Shown here: one piece after another, positions 1 through 49,499 of the stretch
How positions within the stretch are numbered: the first letter of the stretch is position 1
How the letters are laid out: each line of letters starts with the position of its first letter
Assembly (NCBI GenBank): GCA_965240325.2
Contig: OZ251223.1
Span: forward strand, 2,728,001 to 2,792,000
From: Rebecca billardiae RCC1528
Lineage: Eukaryota > Protista > Haptophyta
Length of the DNA stretch: 64,000 nt
Direction: 5' to 3'
Translations under genes and position numbers: made by a program
The notes under the pieces: model-generated
The model's database searches: none
Seen by the model: the letters and a program-made list of their open reading frames with translations, nothing else
Told to the model about the DNA's origin: nothing

Positions 1-897
1 CATCCGCCACACCTCGTTCGCGCTGAAGAAGCCGGCATTCGAGGGCGGCGCGGGCGCGCCTGGCGCTCCCGACAAGGGTGCTGCGGAGCCGGCGGCGGGC
101 GGGCCCACGCGCCCAAGCCGGGGCGGCAGCGCAGCGTAGAGTGCGCCCAAGGAGATGCGCGCCTCAGCATCCGTGGAGCCCTCCGTGAAGATGTGGCCTC
201 GCGAGCTCATGCGGCCAAGCTGCTGCCGGGCCGCCCACAGCTCCGCAATCGTCTGCCGATCACTGTCGGACAGAGCCAGGCTCCCCATGCCGCGAAGGTC
301 CGTGACAAACTCGGCATCATCCTCGGCCGCGGCAAGGCTGTCCACAGGAGAGCACGGCGGCCGAGCCAGGCACTCCTCGCGCTCGCGCTGCTCTTCGCGC
401 GCGTGCTCGGCCTCGAGCTCGCGGCTCTCCTCCGGGAAGAGGAGCTTGATTGCCGTCCACATCGCTGCGTTGACGACTGGCTCGCCCGACGTGCGTGGGA
501 GCTCACAGCGACAGAGCGGGCAGTGCATGCCGCAGCGGCGCGCCGAACGAGCCATGCACAGCGCGCAAAAGTTGTGGCCGCAGCTTGTTGTTGTTGGCTT
601 CACGCACACCTCCATGCACACGCCGCAGGTAAACTCGGCGCGTAACTTTGAGAGGATCAGCATGCGCCCGGGGCTCGCCGCCTTCGCTGACGAAGCCGGC
701 GGCAGTCGGTTTGTGTGCGCGCTGGGTGTGAGCACGGGCGGAAGGCTCAGTCCAGCTTTTGGCGGCTCAGCCTCACGCGGTACGAAGTGGGGGTCCTCGC
801 GCTCGATTTGCTCCGCCATATGTGCCATGTCCCAGCCGGCCCGCTCCGCGAGGGCCTGGAACGTCGGCGTACCGGGGGCGCCGCCCGTCAGCGTCAT
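1..897 (-). CDS. C3HC4 RING-finger E3 ubiquitin ligase (runs off window start; start codon uncertain)
   Basis: Manual minus-strand translation is open to base 1 and contains FTCGVCMEVCVKPTTTSCGHNFCALC...CPLCR...VNAAMWTAIKLLFP. The listed + ORF 155..1207 is its antisense shadow. Confidence 0.85.
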   Translation of the reverse strand, partial: MTLTGGAPGTPTFQALAERAGWDMAHMAEQIEREDPHFVPREAEPPKAGLSLPPVLTPSAHTNRLPPASSAKAASPGRMLILSKLRAEFTCGVCMEVCVKPTTTSCGHNFCALCMARSARRCGMHCPLCRCELPRTSGEPVVNAAMWTAIKLLFPEESRELEAEHAREEQREREECLARPPCSPVDSLAAAEDDAEFVTDLRGMGSLALSDSDRQTIAELWAARQQLGRMSSRGHIFTEGSTDAEARISLGALYAALPPRLGRVGPPAAGSAAPLSGAPGAPAPPSNAGFFSANEVWRM

Positions 898-1118
898 CGT
901 CAAGACGTCGACGACCGGCTCGGTGGTGCAGAGCCGCAGGGGAGAGCAATCTGAGGAGAGTTCATGCGCGCAGCCGTTTCGAGAGTCCGGGCGACGAGCG
1001 CGCGCGACAAGCCAACTGACGCTCGGCTTTCGCAACCATTGCTCTCCACACCTCCGGCTCCCGATCGAGAGACCCAGCCTGCAAAGAATCATCAGGGTCC
1101 AACTTCGAGAATCGCGCG

Positions 1119-2863
1119 ATGGCGTCGCTGTCGCGGCTGACGCGAGCTGCCCTCGGGACGACAGCCGGGGTGGCTGGCGTCGCCTTCGTCGCGTACGAGC
1201 AGGATGAGGGCGTTCGGCGTTCGATGATCTTTTGGAGCCGCGTGCTGCCGATCTACGCGCACTACCGCTGGCTCCAGTACGTGGAGCTGCCGGCGCGAGG
1301 GATCGACAACTCGAGCGATGAGTGCATGCGCGCGTATGACGTGCTTCACGAGCGGTACGCGCCAATCGTCGAGCGCTCGGCGCTCGAGCTCCGGGGCTTC
1401 TACCTTAAAGCGGCGCAGCTCGTGTCCACGCGCGACGACTTTGTGCCACCCGCGTACCTCGTGTGGTGCAAGCGCATGCAAGCGGAAGTGCCCACCCCTT
1501 TCCGCCCTGGCGAGGGCCGCCGGATCGTCGAGAAGGCGCTCGGCGGTGCGGAGGAGTTCGCGCGCACCTTTGCGCACTGGGAGGAGCAGCCGTGCGGCTC
1601 GGCGTCCATCGGCGTGGTGCACCGTGCCCGGCTGGCGGGAGACGGGCGCGAGGTGGCGGTGAAGGTAATGATGCCAGGCATTGAGTCCAAGTTCCGCTCC
1701 GACCTGGGCACGATCCGCCGCTTCTGCGCGCTCGCGATGCCGCAGCACGTCTCTGGGCTCGACGAGATCGATGCACAGTTCTTCACCGAGTTTGACTACA
1801 CGCTCGAGGCGCGCTCGATGGAGACGATCCACGACAACCTCGCGCGCACCCGCTGGACGAAGAAGGTGGTCGTGCCGAGGCCTGTCCCCGAGCTGTGCTC
1901 GCAGCACGTGCTCGTGATGGAGTACCTGCCGGGCGTCAAGCTGGACGACGGGCTGCGCGCGCAGTGGAGCCGGGTCGCCGAGCGTCGCGGCGTCTCGCTC
2001 GACAAGCTCGAGGCCATCGAGCGAAGCCGCCCACCGCGCGAGCTCTCGGACTCGCACTGGCGGCACCTGGCGGTCCGGCTGTGGCTGCGCATCTTCGATC
2101 TCGCGGCCAACGCGCCGCGGCTCGCGTTCAACTGGACGGTCGGCGCGCTCGTGGGCGTGCGGCTCCGGACGGAGTGGACGGAGGTTCCCATCGATCTGGC
2201 TGCAGTCATCCGCACGATCTGCGACGTGCATGCGCACGAGCTGTTTGTCGACGGCTGCTTCAACGGTGCGCCGGCCGCCGCGCCCTCGCCCGCGCGATAC
2301 TTAAGCGAGCCGGGCGCCCGGCGCTCACATGCTGCGCCCCGCCCACATCCCGCACATCCTCGGCACTCCGTGCTGGTTGGCTGCACCGACGCGCAGGCGA
2401 CCCCCACCCCGGCAACATCCTGCTGCTCCCCGACGGGCGCATCGGGCTGGTCGACTACGGGCAGGTGAAGCACATCCCAAAAGACTTTCGGATAAAGTAT
2501 GCGCGGCTAATTCTGGCGATCGCCGACCGCGACAATGAGGAGGCCGTGCGGATCGCGCGCGACGAGATCGGGCTGCGCACCCGCTACTGCGATCCGGAGA
2601 TCATGTGGCGCATTCTCGCGTTCAACCATGACCGCGACACGCCCGACGTGACGAATGGCCTCAACCTGCAGCTCTTCAGCGAGTGGGCGGAGGCGCGTGA
2701 CCCCATGGAATTCGTGCCGCGCGACCTGGTCTTCCCGGGGCGCGTGACCCTCATCCTACGCGGGTATGGCAACGCGTTTGGCCTAAAGCTGAGCGTCGCG
2801 CAGCTGTGGCGACCACACGCCGAGCGACTACTGCGTGAGGAGGGCCTGCTCGCCCCGGCGTGA
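1119..2863 (+). CDS. ABC1/ADCK/UbiB atypical protein kinase, 2 exons (intron 2266-2396)
   Basis: Motifs GFYLKAAQ, SASIGVVHRA, VAVKV, EFDY, LVMEY. Splicing GTGCGC...GCGCAG joins FNG|DPHPGNILL...LVDYG. Confidence 0.93.
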
Positions 2864-19283: not shown

Positions 19284-19422
19284 CAGGCCTCGCAGGCGGA
19301 CGGCTGAACGAATTTTCCGGCGGCGCAGCCATCGGCGACGGCTTCATGGGCGGTGACAGTTGGCGGGCGTCGATCTCGCCTGCCTGAGCTGTGTGCGTCT
19401 CTTATTCTTTCTTAGTAAACTG
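19284..19422 (-). mobile_element. End fragment of the CAGTTTACTA element family
   Basis: Matches 32618-32721, ~32944-33073, ~27997-28045, ~37172-37260 and 37670-37714; ends ...TAGTAAACTG|TA. Confidence 0.85.
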
Positions 19423-26095: not shown

Positions 26096-26250
26096 GCGGC
26101 CGCGTGAGCGTCGACGCGCGGGCCTACGCGGGGCGCCGGCCTCGCGGAGCGCTCACGATGGCTGCCTACCGCGCCGCCGAGGTTTGGTGCCGGACGTGAC
26201 CCCGATTGATTGACGACGTTGTTTGCATCGCCCCGCGTGGCCGCGCTCCG

Positions 26251-27828
26251 ATGACGGACTCGGCGCTGGCAGACCCGGACCTGCGGAACGCGATGCTGAT
26301 CGTGACGGTCCTCTTCACCGCCTCCCTCGTCCTCACACGCCGCCTCCTCTGGCCGCGTGACGAGCCGCACGCGTGCCCGTGCGCGCCGACGTCCGCATGG
26401 GCCAACCTTGCCGGCCTCACGAGCCCGTGGGCGCCCGAGTACGTGCTCGACCTGACGCGCCGGCTGGGCGACAGCCATGCGTTCCGCGTGCGCCTGCCCT
26501 TCCTCTCGTGGCAGCTGTACGTGCTCACCGACGTGGAGGCCGCGCGCGCGCTGCTGGACGACCCGGCCGCGGCCAAGCCGGCGTGGTATTACGCGCCGCT
26601 CAACGGGTGCACGGGCTGGGCGTCGACGGTGTTCACGGCGCCGACGCTGGCGGCGTGCGAGCGCGACCGGCGGCTTGCGGCGCCCGCGTTCAACGCCACG
26701 GGCCTCGCGCGCGCGCGCCGCGCGTGCGCCAAGCACGCCGCGGCGCTCGCGGCGAGCACCGTCGAGCGGGCGTGTGGCACGGATGGCGGCGTGGACGTGA
26801 GCCAGCTGTCGCTGCGGCTGTGCGCGGGCGTGGTGTGCGAGGCGTGCTTCGGGTACGAGCTCTCGTTCGCGGAGACGGAGGTGCTCATCGAGGCCGTCAC
26901 CTGCCTGGCGCGCGAGTACGCGCAGCGCCGGCTCGCCAACCCGCTGCGCGCGTACGCCTCAGCGCTGCTGCCGGAGGCGCGGCGCGCGGCCGCCGCCTCC
27001 GGGCGGGTGCGTGCGCTCTGCGCGCGCATGCTGCAGCAGCACCGCGCGCAGGGCACCGCCGCGCCGCGCGACTCGCTGCTCGCCGCGCTGGACGGCCCCG
27101 CCGCTGCCGCCACGCCCGATCGCGCCAAGCTCTCCGAGCTCAGCGGCTGGCTGCTCGCCGCCGTGGACACGAGCGCGCACGCACTGGGCTGGTTGCTCTG
27201 CGAGCTGGCGGCGGCGGGCGCGGACGGGCCGCAGCGCGACGCGCGGGCGGAGGCGCGCGCGAGCGCGGGCGGGCAGCGCGGCGCGCCGGCCGCACCGCTC
27301 CTCGACGCGTGCGTGCGCGAGACACTCCGCCTCCACCCCCCGACCGCCTTCCTCGTGCGCACCACGGCGAGCGCGCTCCCGCTTCGCGCCCGGCGCGGCC
27401 CCGGCGCGCGCGCGCCCGCGGGCGGTGGAGGCGCTGCGGATCCGAGCACGGCCCCGGCCGCGGCCGTCCCGGCCGGCGCGCACGTGCTCGTGCCCATCTT
27501 CGCGCTGCAGCGCTCGGCGGCGGCGTTCGAGGAGCCCGACAGCTTCGTGCCGGAGCGCTGGCGTGCCCAGGGCGGCGTGTCCTCCGCGCCGCACTCGCGG
27601 CTGGCGCAGAGCTGCCTGCCGTTCGGCGCTGGCCGGCGCGCGTGCCCGGGCGAGGCGTGGGCGCGCGCGAGCGTCGCGGCGCTCGCCGCCGAGCTGCTCG
27701 CGCGGTACGAGCTGAGCGCGCTGCAGCCGCCGCTGCCGTACACCGTGCGCACGCGCATGCCGTTCTGCGCGCGCCTGCGCGTCGAGCACGCGCGCAGCGC
27801 TGACGCTAGTGCCCCGCGCTCGGAGTAG
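26251..27828 (+). CDS. Cytochrome P450
   Basis: N-terminal TM anchor, I-helix AAVDTS, ETLR (ExxR), PERW, heme motif PFGAGRRACPG. Confidence 0.92.
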   Translation: MTDSALADPDLRNAMLIVTVLFTASLVLTRRLLWPRDEPHACPCAPTSAWANLAGLTSPWAPEYVLDLTRRLGDSHAFRVRLPFLSWQLYVLTDVEAARALLDDPAAAKPAWYYAPLNGCTGWASTVFTAPTLAACERDRRLAAPAFNATGLARARRACAKHAAALAASTVERACGTDGGVDVSQLSLRLCAGVVCEACFGYELSFAETEVLIEAVTCLAREYAQRRLANPLRAYASALLPEARRAAAASGRVRALCARMLQQHRAQGTAAPRDSLLAALDGPAAAATPDRAKLSELSGWLLAAVDTSAHALGWLLCELAAAGADGPQRDARAEARASAGGQRGAPAAPLLDACVRETLRLHPPTAFLVRTTASALPLRARRGPGARAPAGGGGAADPSTAPAAAVPAGAHVLVPIFALQRSAAAFEEPDSFVPERWRAQGGVSSAPHSRLAQSCLPFGAGRRACPGEAWARASVAALAAELLARYELSALQPPLPYTVRTRMPFCARLRVEHARSADASAPRSE

Positions 27829-32617: not shown

Positions 32618-32723
32618 TTCCGGCGGCGCTACCATCGGCGACGGCTTCATGGGCGGTGACAGTTGGCGAGCGTCAATCTCGCCTGCCTGAGCTGTGTGCG
32701 TCTCTTATTCTTAGTAAACTGTA

Positions 32724-32774
<51 letters not shown>

Positions 32775-33073
32775 TAAAATTATTATAAATACTACCGCGG
32801 GCCGGCGCCGCCTCCGCCGTCCGATCTGCTGCCAGATTCATGCATTCGTCAGATATTGACATCGCTACCGCCACGCCCACGTCCGCCACTCACCGTGGTC
32901 ACGGGCTACAGATATACTACGACGAGTACAGAACTTCCACGCGACTAAGAATAAGAGACGCACACAGCGCTCAGGCAGGCGAGATTGACGCCCGCCAACT
33001 GTCACCGCGCATGAAACCGTCGCCGATGGTAGCGCCGTCGGAATATTCGTTCAGCCGTCCGCCTGCGAGGCCT
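32618..33073. mobile_element. Two oppositely oriented CAGTTTACTA-family end fragments flanking a (TA)n tract
   Basis: 32618-32721 (-) and ~32944-33073 (+) match 19284-19422. Confidence 0.8.
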
Positions 33074-33355: not shown

Positions 33356-34873
33356 CCCGCCAGCCGCCCCTGGAGACCGGCGCCGAATCGCGGATCGGAT
33401 CGAATGGGACAGGCGTGGGACCCATTCTATGCTTTAAGACACATATACGACGGCGCAGGTGTCCTGATAATGATTTGTCGTCGGCAGTAAGTCCCCGATC
33501 GTCGACAAGCCGCGGCGTCATGGTGCGGCCTGAAATACTACGGACCGCGTAGACGCTCCGCAGCCGCGCGTTTTTGAAACGGCAGAGTGATGCACGGGGC
33601 TGGCGCGCACTGACGCGTGCCACTGACGTGTCTAAACTACTGCTGCTAGTACGTAGCTAGCTTAGTACTAACGGGAATCCCACTGCTATCGGTCGGCTCA
33701 GTTTCAGAGTGGCTATTCACGGCGCCTCTCCCAGCTTGCCGGTTTTGCACGCGACGACTGCGGTCTTCCTGCCAATGTGGCTGCAGGGGAGCTCTTCCAG
33801 GCTCGGCAGCGGGCGATACTGCACAGGGCGAGGAGCGCGCGGGTGGGACGGTGGGCATCGAGTGCTCCGGCTCTGCGTCTCCGTCAGCTGTTTCGGTGAC
33901 ACAGACTCGTTTCACGTTTGCGCAGGAGAAATGGGCAAACACGTGCTACAGGATGATGGAGGAGAAGCGCTCGGGGGGCGGCTTACACGTCCGGTTGAGC
34001 TTGCCCACGTGTGTTTTGGATCTCGAATTACTGCTCCGACGAGCCCGCGCGCCTGCCACGTCTGGCGTGGTCCGCGAGTGGCCGTCCACGCCGCATGAAG
34101 CACGACCTTCCACGCGGGAGCTCGGGGGGGGGAACCCTACAGTTTACTAAGGGGTTAAGCCACTATAACTGTCAGGCAGCGCCATCGTGCCGACGTGCCC
34201 ACGGCCCACGTACGCGAATTTGTGCGACATTCACAGCGACGAGGTCGCGGTCCCCGGCCGCTCCGACGCGCTCTTGACTTCCGCGTGGGACGTGCGGAGG
34301 TCAAGAACCCATCCTACTCGTCGACGGTGCCGACCTCGCCGCCCTGAATGTCGCACAAATTGGAGATTGGCACCTCGCGCGTGCAGGCCGCGACACGCAT
34401 GCCAGGTCCGCGCGGCGCTCTGTGGGCAAGCGAGCCAAGGGGCGCAGCGAGTCCGGTGCGGCTGTCGTACGGGTCGAGCGCGAGCGCCGAGTCGCAGCCG
34501 CGCGCGCGCCGCGCCGCTGGCGCCGGGTCGCCCGGGGGAGAAGGCGCAGCTGCAGTGCTCCTCTGCCATGTACATGAGTGTCGGCAAAGGCGGTACACCG
34601 GTAGTTCGTATTGGTACGGTACCGGAGTGACCGGAATCTGCTCTCTGATTTCTACCGATTCATCGGCCACCAGTCTGATCACCCGACGACGACACCCGGG
34701 ACCCCTAATGAATGGGAATTTGTTATTACCGGTTCGACTGATGGATTCATACGAGCCGACCGAGCGAGCCTATTATAAAGTACCTCCTCATCCGAGGGTG
34801 GACTCTTGATTCTCAATGATCATACCGCTCAGTGTAGCAGCGTCCCCCTTCGCCCGATTGCAGTGTGGGTGTC

Positions 34874-36878
34874 ATGAGGTCTGGGGTGCGCACGCACCCT
34901 GGCGACCGCCCCGGGCCGAATGCGGACGGCGAGCGGGCACCTAGGGCGCACCCTCTTCGAGGGACGCCGCGCTCGGCGATCGCCGACGCGCTCACTCGCG
35001 CGCGCGAAGAGGTGTGTGCCCTTGCGCGCACGCCCTCGCCGCTCGCACGCGCACGCATGCCCTTCTGTCTGACCGCTGCCTTTGTGGCGTCGCACGATCA
35101 CAGGGCCGCCGGCGGCAAAGGGCGATTCAGGCTCCTCTCCTCGCGGCTGGCCTGCTCTTCATCGTGGTGACCATCCTATCCCGGTTCGCTTGGTCGCACG
35201 CCCTGTGGGCCGTGTCTGAATACCTTGCACCCGAAGTGACGGTCATCTACTTTCTAACCCTTGGCTCACTCTTCATGATGCTTGCGCTGATGCCGTCCCA
35301 GCCGCGCGGCGTGCTGATCGGTGCGACGATACTGATGCTGTTGGACGCCTTCGTCGTCGCGGTGTACATCCCCGGCCACGTCGTGCCGCACGCGCACGAG
35401 GTGTATGCTCGCGCGAGAGCGTCCCGCGCGCAGAGCCCCGAAACGATCATCCGCTTGGCTGGAACGAGCGTGATGACGAGCGTGTACATCGGCGCCGTCC
35501 TGGTGCTGCTCCATCTGATTTGCTCGAGACGCATGACTGCGCGCGCGCGGCTCGACCGTATCTGGCGCGCGTACGCGTCGACGCAGCTCGTGATGGGCGC
35601 CATCGCCCTCGCCGAGGACATCCGCTTTGCAGTGGGCGCCCGGCCTACGCGGATGGCGCCCTTCTCGTTCTCGCTGCTCCAGCTCGTGTGCGGCGTGGCT
35701 GCCGCGTCGGGTCGCCTGCGCGAGCTCGTTCACACGTGGCTCGCGTCGCGTGGCGAGGGCATCAGCTCGGCGACTACAATCAGCGTGCTGGTCAACGGGC
35801 GCTCGAGCGATGACGTGCTGCAGCTGGCGCAGGCGACGTTGCGCTCGGTCAGCGCGGACAAGGTGAATGCCGCAGGGCTGGGCGGCGTGGTGGACGAGGA
35901 CGACTGCTTCAGGCATTCGCAGCCCGCAGCGTTCGGCAGCGTGGACGCGTTTGTGTGCCACTCGCACCACGACAGCGGCGTGGAGAAGGCAGAGCAGCTG
36001 CGGCTGTGGGCGGCCGAATTCAGTCGCACGCACGGGCGCGCGCCCCGACTGTGGATCGACAGCTACTGCCTCATGTCGGCGTCTCCTGAGTCGAGCTTGT
36101 CATGCCTGCCGGTGTATCTCGCCTCCTGCGATCGCGTGCTCGTCCTTCACGGCCCGACGCTACTCGACCGCCTGTGCGCGCTCGCATGCGCGCGCGACGC
36201 GCCCGGTGGTGCTCCCACCGCCAGCGCGCCCAGTGCACAACAGCCCACGCCTCACTCACACCCGGCCCGTGTGGCTCCCCGCCGCCCCTGCACGCCCCGT
36301 TCCCCGCCATGGCGTGCAGCTGGTGCGTCGTCGAGCTGTTCGTTCACCTCATCATCGGCACCGATCGCCGTCGCAGCGTGGATGTGCTGCGGCTGCCGGG
36401 CGTGGAGTCTTACGCCGAGTTCAAGAGCTTTGACGCGCGCCAGGCGCAGTGCGCGTACAGCCAGGACCGCCAGCTGCTCCTCACGGTGATCGAGGCCTTC
36501 CCGGGTGGCATCAGCGCCTTCAACGGCGCAGTCGTGCGCTCACTGGCGGAGCAGTTCGAGTCGTGGCGGACATCGTCTGGCGCCTCCGAGCGCCATGTCG
36601 TGGTAGACGTCGACCCACTGGGCCAGGACGACCTTCTGGATCCGGCAGTCGCCACCGCTCCGTCGGAGGATCTCACGTCGACGGAGCTGCTGGCTGCAAC
36701 GGCCGCAATCACGGGCCGGGCGGCAGCCAATGGCGACGACTCCGATCATGCTGGTAATCCCAGCGCCGTCATTGACGACGTCGAAACGGGCCCATCGGCA
36801 TCAGCCCGATCAGGGGCGGCGCGGAGCGGGGCTCCTGCCGAACGGGCTGAATGGCGTCGGATCACTCGGAGTGTGTAG
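34874..36878 (+). CDS. Multi-pass membrane protein with C-terminal TIR/HET-like domain; introns 35012-35103 and 36174-36319
   Basis: About six hydrophobic helices, then DAFVCHSHHD...LWIDSYCL...LPVYLASCDRVLVLHGPTLLDRL|WCVVELF after splicing. Confidence 0.8.
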
Positions 36879-37280
36879 TCTAGGTGATGATGAGCTAGTG
36901 ATCCTGGCGGCTGATGAAATCCCGTTTGTTCATCAGCGACAGCAGGCTAGTGCCGGCGGACCGCGCACGCGTTCTGCAATACGCGAACGAGCGGATGACG
37001 TCTTGACGACGATGCGCGCTATGATAAACCCCAGCATATATACATTAGACTTATAGTAATAGTTAGTAGCGGATGTCTGCCGTAGCCAACTCCAACTTCT
37101 GACCAGGACCCCGGACCAATTCTATGATTTCTGGGAGCGGATGAAAGCCGGATTCTACATTTGTACTTCTGGCGCCTGCCTGCTGATTGCTGTGTGCGTC
37201 TCTTATTCTTAGTGCTGTACTCTCGCCTGCCTGAGCTGTGTGCGTCTCTGATTCTTAGTAATCCCTAAACGGGTAGATCG

Positions 37281-37819
37281 ACCAAACCGAGCTCAGAACC
37301 GGCCGTGTACCGAGCTCAGGCGATGTACCATGGTACGTTTTGGTACACTTTGGTACAGGTTGGTACATTTTTCAAGTGTACCAACGTGTGCCAAAATGCT
37401 GTACCAAATGTATCGAAATCAGTACCAGTTCGCACCGAGATATGTACCGGGTGTACCAAATCCGACCAAAATGTACCAACTCGTCCAAAGAATGTACCAA
37501 CGTATCCTAAAAGGTACCAAAATGTACCAAATGTACCAACTCTCCCAAATGTACCAGCAACGGAGCGATGGCGTCGCAAGCGGCGCATTCCACGCCCGCA
37601 TTTGGTACATTGTCAGGATGCGTTGGTACACATTGGTACATAATTGGTACACCATTGGTACATTTGGTACAGTTTACTAAGAATAAGAGACGCACACAGC
37701 TCAGGCAGGCGAGATACATCTCTGACATGTACCAATAGTGTACCAATTCTGTACCAAAGTGTACCATGGTACATCCGCTGAGCTCGGTACACTCCTCATT
37801 CTGATGAGCTCGGTTTGGT
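37281..37819. mobile_element. ~540-bp foldback/MITE-like element filled with GTACCAA repeats
   Basis: ACCAAACCGAGCTCA...TGTACCGAGCTCAG is mirrored at the right end; dozens of TGTACCA/TGGTACA units in both orientations; nested 45-bp CAGTTTACTA fragment at 37670-37714. Confidence 0.85.
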
Positions 37820-39065: not shown

Positions 39066-39092
39066 CGTACGGTACACGAATTGGCGGATGCC

Positions 39093-40779
39093 ATGGCGTC
39101 GCCAGCGCGCCTGGACGTGCCCGAGCTCGGCGGCGATGCGGCAGCGACGGCGAGCGCGTGCACGACCGAGCTCCTGAAGATCTTTCTGCGTGACATTGAT
39201 GGCCGGCGGGCGCGAGCGGCGCTTCACGCGCGGCGCGCAGAGGCCCATGAAGCGATGGGCGACTTTAACAAAGCGCTGTCTGACGCGCGCGCTGCACGCC
39301 ACCTGGACCCGAGCCTAGAGGGAGCGCGTGTGGTGCACGCCCGAGCGCTGATGCGCCTTGGCCGCGCCGGTGACGCTCGCTCCCTGCTGGATCGTGCGGA
39401 GCCATCCCCCGCCGCCGCTGAGCTCGGGCTGGAGGTCGATGCGCAGCTGGCATCGGCGAGCGCGGCCTCCGAGGCGCGCGTGAGCGAGGAGTCGGAGGCC
39501 GGTGCCGCCGCGCGCGCTTCGGTGTGGCTCTCGGACGAGCTGATCGGCGTTGTGGCGTCGAAGCTGGCGCCTGACATCGGCTCCCTGGCGCGCCTCGCCG
39601 CAGTGAGCCGCGCCTGCCGCGTGGCCGCCCACCAGCCGCGGCTATGGCGCGACCTGGACCTGCGGCCGTTCCGGCGTGCTCTGAGCTGCGCGCATGTAGC
39701 CATCCTCGTGCGCCGCGCGTACGCGCCCCAAGGCGACGGGCACGGTGTCTTTCGGCTCGTGCTAGACGGTTGCCGCGGTCTGGGCGCCACGGGCTCCGCG
39801 GATTTCGCCCCGCTCCTCGAGCTCGCGCGCGAGGCGGAGGGCGGCGGCCCGCTGCGCTCGCTGCGAGCACTGCGCATGCGCGAGCTGGGCGAGCTGGACG
39901 CGGCTGCGCTCGGCGCGTGGCTCGGCGCGCTCCCCGCCGCCGGCCTGCGCGAGCTCGACCTGAGCTACACGGCGACGATGAGCGACACGCTGCTGCCCAA
40001 GCTGTCCAACCAGACCGAGCTGCGCGTGCTCAAGCTGCGAGGGTGCGAGATCAACGACTCAGGCTTGGAGCAGCTGCTGCCGCAGCTGAGCGCACTCACC
40101 GAGCTCGATATCTCCATCTGGTGCGTGTGCGCGCACATCCGCGTGCGCGTCCGCCGCGCCGAATGCGGCGTGGTGCACCGAGCGCTTGAGTGCCAGCCGT
40201 ACCTACGCGATGAGACACGGGCGTCCCTGCCGCCGGCGCTGCTCACGCGCCCTTGTGCCTGCCGCGTTTGCCTGCCGCTGCAGGCCGTACCACCGCATGC
40301 GCCGATTTGGCCGTGTTGGGGACGGAGCGCTCCGCGCGTGCGCCAAGATCGAAAGTCTGCGCACGCTCAAGGTGTGTGGGCGGCGGGGCACGTCGCCCGC
40401 AGGCCTGGCGGCCCTGCTGGTGCGCCGCAGCGCGGTTCGCGTGGATGTGCGGCACAACCTCAGCCTCAACAACGCCCGTGCGCTTGCCGCCGTGCTCGGC
40501 GCGGCGGCCGAGGCCGGCCTCCCGGCGCCCACCCTCATCACAGACGACGACACCATCTCGGATGACGAGCTTCCGTTGTGCGACGAAGGAGATGAGGGCA
40601 TGCCCATCTTTCCCACTCCTGCTGGCTCGCAGGCTGCTGCGTACTCCGCGCTCGGCGTTGCGCCACCAAATGAGACCGCGATGCTGGCGCGCTGCACGTG
40701 CGCCGACGCTGTCATGCTGCCCCTGCCCCCGCTCGTGGCCTGGCACGCGCCTGAAAATAGCAGCATGATCGATGATTAA
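39093..40779 (+). CDS. TPR + F-box + leucine-rich-repeat protein; intron 40121-40283
   Basis: TPR RAEAHEAMGDFNKALSDARAA..LDP; F-box LSDELIGVV...LARLAAVSRACR...LWRDLDL; LRRs LRELDLSY, LRVLKLRGCEINDSGL. Confidence 0.88.
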
Positions 40780-48109: not shown

Positions 48110-48359
48110 GCGCGGGGAACGCCCCTGGCGGGCATGCACAGCAGCGCGGTTGATGCCGGGTTGGCGCGCGGGTGTTTTTCATATATCATATTTTTTGTTT
48201 GGCTTATTCCCGCTTTATGGCGGGCCGTATTATTTTTGCGCTTTTTGCGGGGCGGGAAAATGCCACAATATGGCCGGCGGCAACGACGACCGCGGTCGCT
48301 CGTCGGCCGTCGGCCGTCCGAATCGCAATTATCGTCGAGGCAATCGCCGTCCTGCTCCG

Positions 48360-49499
48360 ATGCAGCAGCCATCCAGCCGTGTGCATCGTGCCCTTGCACT
48401 ACTCGTTGCGATACGCAGGTCGGCCGGCATGGTCGTCACGGACCTGGCTTGCAGGCCGCACCTCCACCATTGGCTCTCGTCCGCCACGACGGATCATGAG
48501 CTTGCCACGACAGTTGCTGCAATTGCATCTTCGGCCGTGGAGCTCAGGCAGTTGATCGAGCGCGCGCCGCTCGATGGCCTTTTGGGTAGTGCCGGCTCAA
48601 TCAACGTGCAGGGCGAGGCGCAGAAGCCACTCGATGTGCTCGCGAATGATCTCTTCGTGCGCTCACTCAGCGCGTGCGCGTGCGTGTCCATCATGATCAC
48701 GGAGGAGGAAGCCCAGCCGATCCTCGTCGACGGCGCGCGGGGCTCGCTCGTCGTGGCGTTCGACCCGCTAGACGGCTCGTCAAACCTTGACTGCTCAATC
48801 CCCGTCGGCTCCATCTTTGGAATCTGGCGGTCTGTACCCGAGCAGGATGGCGGAGCCAGATCGGCACTGGCAGGGCGCAACCTGCTCGCTGCTGGCTATT
48901 GCCTGTATTCGAGCGCGTGCCATCTAGTCCTTACACTCGGGCAGCAGACTCACGGCTTCACGCTGAACAGCGCGCGTGGAGAGTTCGTGCTGACACATCC
49001 GTCGATATGCTGCCCATGTCAGGGCGCGTACTACTCGCTCAACGAGGGCCGAGAAGCGGACTGGCCAGACGGCCTGAGGCGTTACATCCAAGACGTGAAG
49101 AATGGGCGAGGAACTAGCGGCAACCGGTATTCATCGCGCTACGTTTGCTCACTAGTTGCAGACGTCCACCGCACGCTCCTTTACGGCGGGTGGGCGGGCA
49201 ACCCCCGCGCACACCTCCGGCTGCTTTACGAGGCGGCGCCCATCGCCTTCCTGGTGGAGCAGGCTGGTGGCAGCGCGACAGATGGAAGCAAACCGATTCT
49301 GGATGTTGCGGTGCCACTGCTGTCCATCGCCGACCAAGCTGGTCCGCCGGAGTTTCCCGCAAGCAGTGGCCGAGTAGACCTCCGCTCGCTCGACGTGCAT
49401 GCCCGCACGCCACTGTTCGCAGGGTCGGCCGAGGACATTGCGGAGCTCCACGCGTATGGAGACGTCGCACAGCTGGGCAGCTTTCGCTACGAGGTGTAA
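48360..49499 (+). CDS. Class I fructose-1,6-bisphosphatase, cpFBPase II-like (start may be 48429)
   Basis: NVQGEAQKPLDV, EEE, FDPLDGSSN, RYVCSLVADVHRTLLYGG..NPR.HLRLLYE. Confidence 0.92.
   Translation: MQQPSSRVHRALALLVAIRRSAGMVVTDLACRPHLHHWLSSATTDHELATTVAAIASSAVELRQLIERAPLDGLLGSAGSINVQGEAQKPLDVLANDLFVRSLSACACVSIMITEEEAQPILVDGARGSLVVAFDPLDGSSNLDCSIPVGSIFGIWRSVPEQDGGARSALAGRNLLAAGYCLYSSACHLVLTLGQQTHGFTLNSARGEFVLTHPSICCPCQGAYYSLNEGREADWPDGLRRYIQDVKNGRGTSGNRYSSRYVCSLVADVHRTLLYGGWAGNPRAHLRLLYEAAPIAFLVEQAGGSATDGSKPILDVAVPLLSIADQAGPPEFPASSGRVDLRSLDVHARTPLFAGSAEDIAELHAYGDVAQLGSFRYEV

Follow-up and report, generated by a model that had tools for sequence, protein, structure and literature searches.

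A three-exon haptophyte gene joining a six-helix membrane module to a predicted TIR-fold domain

What would a single-celled alga do with a membrane protein that ends in a TIR-like domain, and is such a protein encoded at all when the domain can be read through only after an intron has been removed? The question is raised by a locus at positions 34874-36878 (+ strand) in a stretch of 64,000 nucleotides from the haptophyte Rebecca billardiae RCC1528 (assembly GCA_965240325.2, contig OZ251223.1, positions 2,728,001 to 2,792,000); this whole stretch is called the window below. A preliminary description, made from the letters alone, had seen here a membrane sensor coupled directly to a TIR enzyme. 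We find a three-exon gene, with an ATG at 34874, a TAG end and a product of ~588 residues, whose reality we regard as practically certain and whose C-terminal domain is predicted, with high confidence, to take a TIR-type fold. What the domain does there is a matter for more guarded statements. The parts of the gene are as follows.

34874-35011, + strand: exon 1, 46 codons with the ATG; poorly conserved, probably a cytosolic N-terminus
35012-35103, + strand: intron 1, 92 nt, GT..AG, phase 0
35104-36173, + strand: exon 2, running from six membrane helices through a juxtamembrane linker into the TIR/HET-like domain, of which it holds the N-terminal half
35908-36173, + strand: TIR/HET-like domain, N-terminal half (family profile A2 positions ~4-93, E 2e-27)
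35944-35973, + strand: DAFVCHSHHD, motif in the N-terminal domain half
36049-36072, + strand: LWIDSYCL, motif in the N-terminal domain half
36174-36319, + strand: intron 2, 146 nt, GTGCGC..GCAG, phase 2, within the Leu codon that precedes WCVVE
36320-36878, + strand: exon 3, with the C-terminal domain half, the tail and the TAG
36320-36557, + strand: TIR/HET-like domain, C-terminal half (family profile A2 positions 93-174, E 6e-15)
36321-36335, + strand: WCVVE, with the conserved Glu codon at 36333-36335
36558-36878, + strand: acidic, low-complexity C-terminal tail and TAG; 40% identity, mostly gaps, against the orthologous locus L001, and so unconserved in the orthologue

An orthologue (P0001) shares the exon structure; its identity to exon 2 is 56%, and the alignment takes in 100% of the query (E 7e-120). 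At its locus, L001, a GT..AG intron stands at each of the two corresponding sites, and WCVTELFIHLIIGTDR is read after the second. An IADxLxRAR motif at the tail of exon 1 is common to both loci, with a GT..AG intron directly after it in L001, and up to the second membrane helix exon 2 offers no ATG in frame. At the DNA level the two loci are 74% and 67% identical in the two domain exons and 58% and 47% in the introns; intron 1 is 47% identical and the exon that follows it 68%. A TATA-like TATTATAAAG lies at 34771-34780, in an AT-richer patch ~95 nt 5' of the start codon, and is a possible core promoter.

The second intron is the critical one, and its removal can be checked against relatives in which the domain is continuous. 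Profile A2 was built from 62 relatives whose domain aligns as one continuous stretch; it takes the exon 2 frame as its positions 4-93 and the exon 3 frame as 93-174, and since these positions abut at 93, the two exon halves meet exactly at the proposed junction. In L001 the profile matches are split across the exons as they are in the window. Equivalent introns occur in the same codon in L001, one codon later in L005 and two codons later in L003, always in phase 2 and always starting GTGCG. Within RLWC(V/I)xE the intron of these loci falls in the Leu, Trp or Cys codon (window 36173|36174; L001 ~3253; L005 ~1400; L003 ~1717). The exon sequence TGGTGCGTC is itself donor-like, which suggests that the intron slides between look-alike donor sites.

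Comparative support for the predicted splice joining both domain halves is thus strong, and the preliminary description was right in this respect: continuity along profile A2 and introns at three related loci both bear out removal of 36174-36319, and the three motifs that it had named (DAFVCHS..D, LWID and WCVVE) were all located. Its statement that WCVVE is invisible among the open reading frames (ORFs) does not hold, because the motif is present in the ORF 36102-36878, merely out of frame with the first domain half. That half sits in the ORF 35014-36489, and what the intron conceals is its in-frame continuation into WCVVE.

Searches with the window protein were run exon by exon, on exon translations. 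A word search with the whole of exon 2 was swamped by words from the membrane segments and found only the orthologue; when restricted by region, the same kind of search gave P0002-P0004. The P0004 domain is intron-free, and a word search with it gave 76 relatives from marine metagenomes, MMETSP and EukProt.

It is on P0004 that the fold was modelled (residues 390-596, 62 sequences; predicted local distance difference test score, pLDDT, 87.2; predicted template modelling score, pTM, 0.84). The first 47 Foldseek matches of this model in the PDB are all TIR domains, with SPARTA (3.6e-4), RUN1 (8.4e-4) and RPP1 (1e-3) accompanied by SNC1, TIR-1/SARM1, MyD88 and AbTir. A wide VIA-align search gives the same picture: all nine chains with Z of at least 8 are TIR, namely MyD88 (9.1), RPP1 (9.0), SARM1 (8.6), SpbK (8.5), IL-18Rbeta, Hydra TRR-2, RPS4/RRS1, IL-1RAcPb and ThsB, followed by nucleoside 2-deoxyribosyltransferases (7.2-7.8) and unrelated Rossmann-like folds (6.8 or less). 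The model superposes on TIR structures over 115-140 residues.

Sequence profiles point the same way from further off. A profile search of PDB sequences places the SIGIRR TIR first (E 0.23) and the SNC1 TIR second (E 0.53), aligning the family's YasRLWcvmE with YASSTWCLNE of SNC1; neither exon 2 nor the P0004 domain found a match when used as a query against PDB sequences. The window exons have no match to Pfam TIR, TIR_2 (PF01582, PF13676) or HET at E up to 10. Among the 62 relatives, TIR_2 is found below threshold in 34 (best E 3.8e-4) and TIR in five (best 0.004), and a few also match ThsB_TIR below threshold; for P0004 the TIR_2 match scores 12.5 bits (gathering cutoff 28) and spans strand A to helix C. 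HET (PF06985, gathering score 22.5 bits) likewise appears below threshold in 34 of the 62 (best E 8.8e-3); the P0004 match to it scores 13.8 bits and covers 19 residues at profile positions 46-64, the middle block only. Because the structural matches are consistent and the motif alignment agrees with them, a TIR-type fold is the firm reading for the family. The TIR-like C-terminal domain of the preliminary description has therefore stood up to structure prediction on a relative, while its HET kinship stands in part, on Pfam HET matches that all remain below the gathering score. The branch to which the domain belongs is HET/TIR-like (FxSHSW / WxDxxCIxQ / RLWCxxE) and common among marine protists.

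Does the window copy keep what an enzyme of this kind would need? In SARM1 and plant TIRs the Glu of WxxxE is catalytic. In NADase-type TIRs (NAD+-cleaving enzymes) this Glu stands at the head of helix C and follows a Trp by four residues, and the window protein has this feature as well. To our knowledge, signalling-only animal TIRs do not conserve a Glu of the catalytic type. Eleven alignment columns are invariant in the 62 family members (F18, H21, D25, W52, D54, L67, P71, R91, W93, E97 and F172), and the window protein has all of these residues, including W93 and E97 of WCVVE; the intact WCxxE-type Glu of the preliminary description is thus retained here and invariant among the relatives. 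A conserved catalytic glutamate of TIRs is restated in PMC12489294. Compared with the orthologue, the domain has a ratio of nonsynonymous to synonymous substitution rates (dN/dS) of 0.24 in its N-terminal half and 0.45 in its C-terminal half, and the membrane part one of 0.61; these are pairwise values from one orthologue with dS of 0.6-0.9, near saturation. These values place the domain under apparent purifying selection; diversifying selection, which had been put forward for a check, finds no backing in them, with no excess of replacements at pairwise resolution. Glu-dependent NAD+-type chemistry may be predicted for the window protein as a serious possibility, a little short of probable.

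The membrane part of exon 2 has its own structure, with the following features.

35107-35720, + strand: six-helix membrane module (hydropathy; AlphaFold2 model ma6f45c8b834e)
~35107-35196, 35230-35286, 35302-35418, 35437-35523 and 35539-35634, with a sixth from 35662, + strand: helices of the AlphaFold2 model
35713-35907, + strand: helical juxtamembrane linker (RLRELVHTWLASRGEG ... LAQATLRSV), between helix 6 and the TIR-like domain

By hydropathy there are five strong segments and a weaker one, and the AlphaFold2 model, which covers exon 2 residues 1-262 and draws on 44 aligned sequences (pLDDT 84, pTM 0.77), has six long helices, in agreement with the count of about six first proposed. In this model the sixth transmembrane (TM) helix, TM6, continues unbroken into the linker helix, where R206, A223, A224 and F246 are nearly invariant (alignments A3 and A4). 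Positive charges precede helix 1 (RRRQR) and follow helix 4 (RRMTARARLDRIWR), and from them we infer a topology in which both ends would be cytosolic (N-in/C-in). The loops of the module are short and the window protein has no ectodomain. In a local iterated search, most of the 76 relatives have a single stretch that aligns with exon 2 residues 1-261, with E-values that come from a 79-sequence database and scores inflated by the membrane segments. Pfam gave no match for the six-helix module. Structural searches with the module returned nothing beyond designed bundles, helical hairpins and some weak matches to ZnT (prob <0.5), which we do not accept as evidence for the fold of a transporter or of a G-protein-coupled receptor. 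A Pfam hit to STT3 (E 0.034) is a chance membrane match and the rest of the exon Pfam scan is noise; the ESM Atlas neighbours of the membrane part (~0.9) are generic prokaryotic multi-TM clusters and uninformative. The predicted six-helix-plus-linker module is a conserved family without a recognisable fold, and this is a modestly new point.

Most relatives carry 4-8 hydrophobic segments before the domain, and a C-type lectin domain is present in 9 of the 76. The lectin-bearing relatives include P0005, P0012, P0029, P0033, P0041, P0045, P0048 and P0066, none of them in the window. With the lectin domain they would be lectin receptors with a TIR-type output. What recurs is a putative cassette in which six helices are followed by linker and domain; an ectodomain is sometimes joined to it, and the window gene is the bare form: it has both the homologous six-helix module and the conserved linker ahead of the FxSHSW / RLWCxxE domain. 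The nearest ESM Atlas clusters to the domain are haptophyte and automatically named HET- or TIR-domain proteins, and the same domain shape also recurs in fusions, with H-NOX in haptophytes and with TPR repeats in oomycetes and ascomycetes. A profile search found no second copy of the domain within the window.

The explanation that we favour, and hold to be somewhat probable, is a membrane-anchored protein, encoded by a nuclear gene of a GC-rich alga, with a cytosolic TIR-fold effector domain and a predicted Glu-dependent cleavage of nucleotides. A short cytosolic N-terminus would lead into the six-helix bundle, with the helical linker running straight from helix 6 to a cytosolic C-terminal TIR fold. 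The membrane modules would gather several copies, upon which the effector domain would become active; the glutamate would then cleave NAD+ or a related nucleotide, and the cleavage would yield a signal molecule, or deplete NAD+, in a stress, infection or cell-death pathway. Since it has no ectodomain, the window copy is less likely to sense a ligand on its own than to be a membrane-anchored effector or another receptor's partner. The label of membrane sensor in the preliminary description accordingly finds nothing in the sequence to rest on, with no ectodomain and a six-helix module that matches no known fold, and we consider such a role for the window copy doubtful.

Several results weigh against the favoured explanation. 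The TIR fold was modelled on a relative that is 45% identical in the N-terminal domain half, not on the window protein itself, and a VIA-align Z of 8-9 against 6-7 for generic Rossmann-like folds is a modest margin. In the matches shown, neither the window exons nor the relatives reach the gathering score for Pfam TIR or HET. Six near-invariant residues are replaced in both the window protein and its orthologue (S20C, W23H, K55S/T, A56Y/H, Q60S and Y88L), and the replaced positions of the SHSW and WLDKACIDQ motifs probably line the pocket. For HET domains in general the biochemical activity is still undetermined (PMC10890737, PMC12881547). The membrane module, finally, has no recognisable ligand site, and no specific fold was found for it (Foldseek best E 0.27; VIA-align giving helical hairpins and designed bundles).

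A bolder version would make the family a class, so far undescribed, of marine-protist receptor-enzymes that are embedded in the membrane and composed of bundle, rigid linker and TIR/HET-like domain. A signal arriving in or across the membrane would pass along the continuous TM6-linker helix and switch on the TIR-type nucleotide-cleaving domain; its source could be the C-type lectin ectodomain in relatives and, in the bare copy, the lipid or membrane state or a partner protein. We think this unlikely. If it were true, the membrane module would be the real novelty, as a fold without a solved relative.

The domain could instead be a non-enzymatic TIR-type adaptor that signals solely by assembling homotypically with the cell's other TIR/HET-like proteins, as the TIRs of TLR and MyD88 do, with the membrane module serving only for localisation. 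The TIRs of MyD88, IL-18Rbeta, IL-1RAcPb and TRIF are indeed among the best structural matches, and an adaptor function was what Dyrka et al. 2014 originally proposed for HET (PMC4986451); yet the enzyme TIRs RUN1, RPP1, SARM1, SPARTA, SpbK and ThsB rank equal or higher, and the invariance in 62 members of the Glu, of the Trp four residues before it and of the polar H21, D25, D54 and R91 is more what one expects of an active site than of an interface. We rate an adaptor as rather unlikely.

Nor do we put much weight, in fact slightly less, on a HET-type cell-death effector whose chemistry would be other than NAD+ cleavage, acting on another nucleotide, nucleic acid, membranes or proteins, and whose likeness to TIR would reflect no more than shared ancestry. 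It is the TIR_2 matches that cover strand A to helix C, with only 19 residues of P0004 matching HET, and the whole domain superposes on TIR structures over 115-140 residues. The WxDxxCIxQ block, on the other hand, matches Pfam HET and not TIR, and one of the Atlas neighbour clusters is automatically named as a HET-domain family. The similarity of HET to TIR drops after helix C (PMC4986451), and an activity as yet undetermined for HET (PMC12881547) leaves room for other chemistry.

The substitutions listed above invite a further alternative: weakened in catalysis, the window copy would be a paralogue that pairs with active members as their regulator or decoy. That the same six positions are replaced in the orthologue marks a stable diverged subfamily, and the copy has no ectodomain, as against the C-type lectin in nine relatives. 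Against such a weakening stand the 11 invariant residues, all kept with W93 and E97 among them, and the dN/dS of 0.24 in the N-terminal domain half; nor are C for S and H for W obviously inactivating. We regard this alternative as improbable. A pseudogene or chance ORF is extremely improbable, for while many long spurious ORFs arise in GC-rich DNA, they would not come with a 56%-identical orthologue conserving both introns, family-profile matches of E 2e-27 and 6e-15 for the two exon halves, intact frames and dN/dS below 1.

The surroundings of the gene comprise these features.

26206-27828, + strand: cytochrome P450 (E 1e-33)
32618-33043, no strand assigned: element like a miniature inverted-repeat transposable element (MITE), upstream flank, with 88-nt inverted arms
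37221-37804, no strand assigned: MITE-like element(s), downstream flank, with the terminal repeat of the upstream element
39081-40565, + strand: ORF, possibly F-box/LRR, 2 kb downstream, with weak TPR, F-box-like and LRR matches, all below Pfam cutoffs
48150-49499, + strand: fructose-1,6-bisphosphatase (E 6e-45)

An Arm-repeat ORF is also among the window neighbours. With the P450 and the fructose-1,6-bisphosphatase as ordinary housekeeping neighbours, there is no obvious immune-gene cluster here. Upstream of the orthologue, at 39-1394 (+) of L001, lies an ORF of 451 residues resembling a methyltransferase; the window neighbours differ. The position of the gene "between two transposon islands" was partly confirmed, in the form of the MITE-like inverted-repeat elements on its two flanks. 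A 33-nt MITE-like terminus (CTGCCTGAGCTGTGTGCGTCTCT.ATTCTTAGT) occurs five times in the window, with none expected, at 19380, 28007, 32683, 37227 and 37676. Nothing points to a link between these elements and the function of the gene.

TIR-type domains are common to immunity and cell death across bacteria, plants and animals. The ways in which marine phytoplankton withstand their giant viruses are little understood. A second modestly new point is that routine annotation misses genes of the present kind because the intron cuts the catalytic motif and the Pfam scores stay below threshold; algal TIR/HET repertoires may be under-counted by standard annotation. The cassette family offers simple candidates for a first biochemical test of a HET-like domain. 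As a first target the window copy is poorer than the canonical relatives because it is diverged and lacks an ectodomain.

Four known systems can be set beside the window gene. Toll-like and IL-1 receptors share its plan, in which a membrane protein carries a TIR-fold domain at a cytosolic C-terminus, and differ in having one membrane helix instead of six and an LRR or Ig ectodomain, which the window protein lacks; the Toll-like architecture of LRR ectodomain, single TM helix and cytosolic TIR is not what we see, with six helices and no Pfam match to LRR in the window exons. The catalytic-type Glu of the window protein is, as far as we know, not conserved in most TLR TIRs. NAD+-cleaving TIRs (SARM1, RUN1/RPP1/SNC1, AbTir, SpbK, ThsB and SPARTA) have the same predicted fold by Foldseek and VIA-align, and the Trp-x-x-x-Glu with which helix C begins is aligned to the WCLNE of SNC1; the family domain, at 10-18% sequence identity to them, differs in its length of ~180 residues and in having an insertion and additional C-terminal helices (model residues 125-182).

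Fungal HET domains (PF06985) appear to have the same three blocks as the family, in the same order (strand A, WxDxxC(I)xQ and RxWxxxE; PMC4986451); they share with it a remote homology to TIR and the habit of an effector module joined to varied sensor parts. The family consensus reads FxSHSW, LWLDKACIDQ and RLWCVME at these blocks, and the window protein LWIDSYCLMS (S for Q) and R-L-WCVVE at the latter two. The arrangement is reversed: the window domain is C-terminal to its membrane module, whereas HET is N-terminal to a NACHT/WD40 or lectin part. HET-like domains of haptophytes (Emiliania among them), stramenopiles and choanoflagellates were aligned with TIR by Dyrka et al. 2014 (PMC4986451).

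A parallel in the same algal group is offered by Gephyrocapsa (Emiliania) huxleyi, with its 15 differentially expressed TIR genes (PMC12489294, New Phytol 2025). In this alga, TIR proteins that have several TM helices at the N-terminus and keep a conserved Glu are induced early in infection by the virus EhV (PMC12489294), and the novelty of architecture that the preliminary description had claimed falls away with them. Like the window gene they come from a haptophyte, keep the putative catalytic Glu and have no NBS or LRR domain; unlike it they were defined by HHsuite matches to Pfam TIR families and have expression data, and the two are set side by side here by description. The window gene is one ordinary member of a large family whose presence in haptophyte algae had been recorded before.

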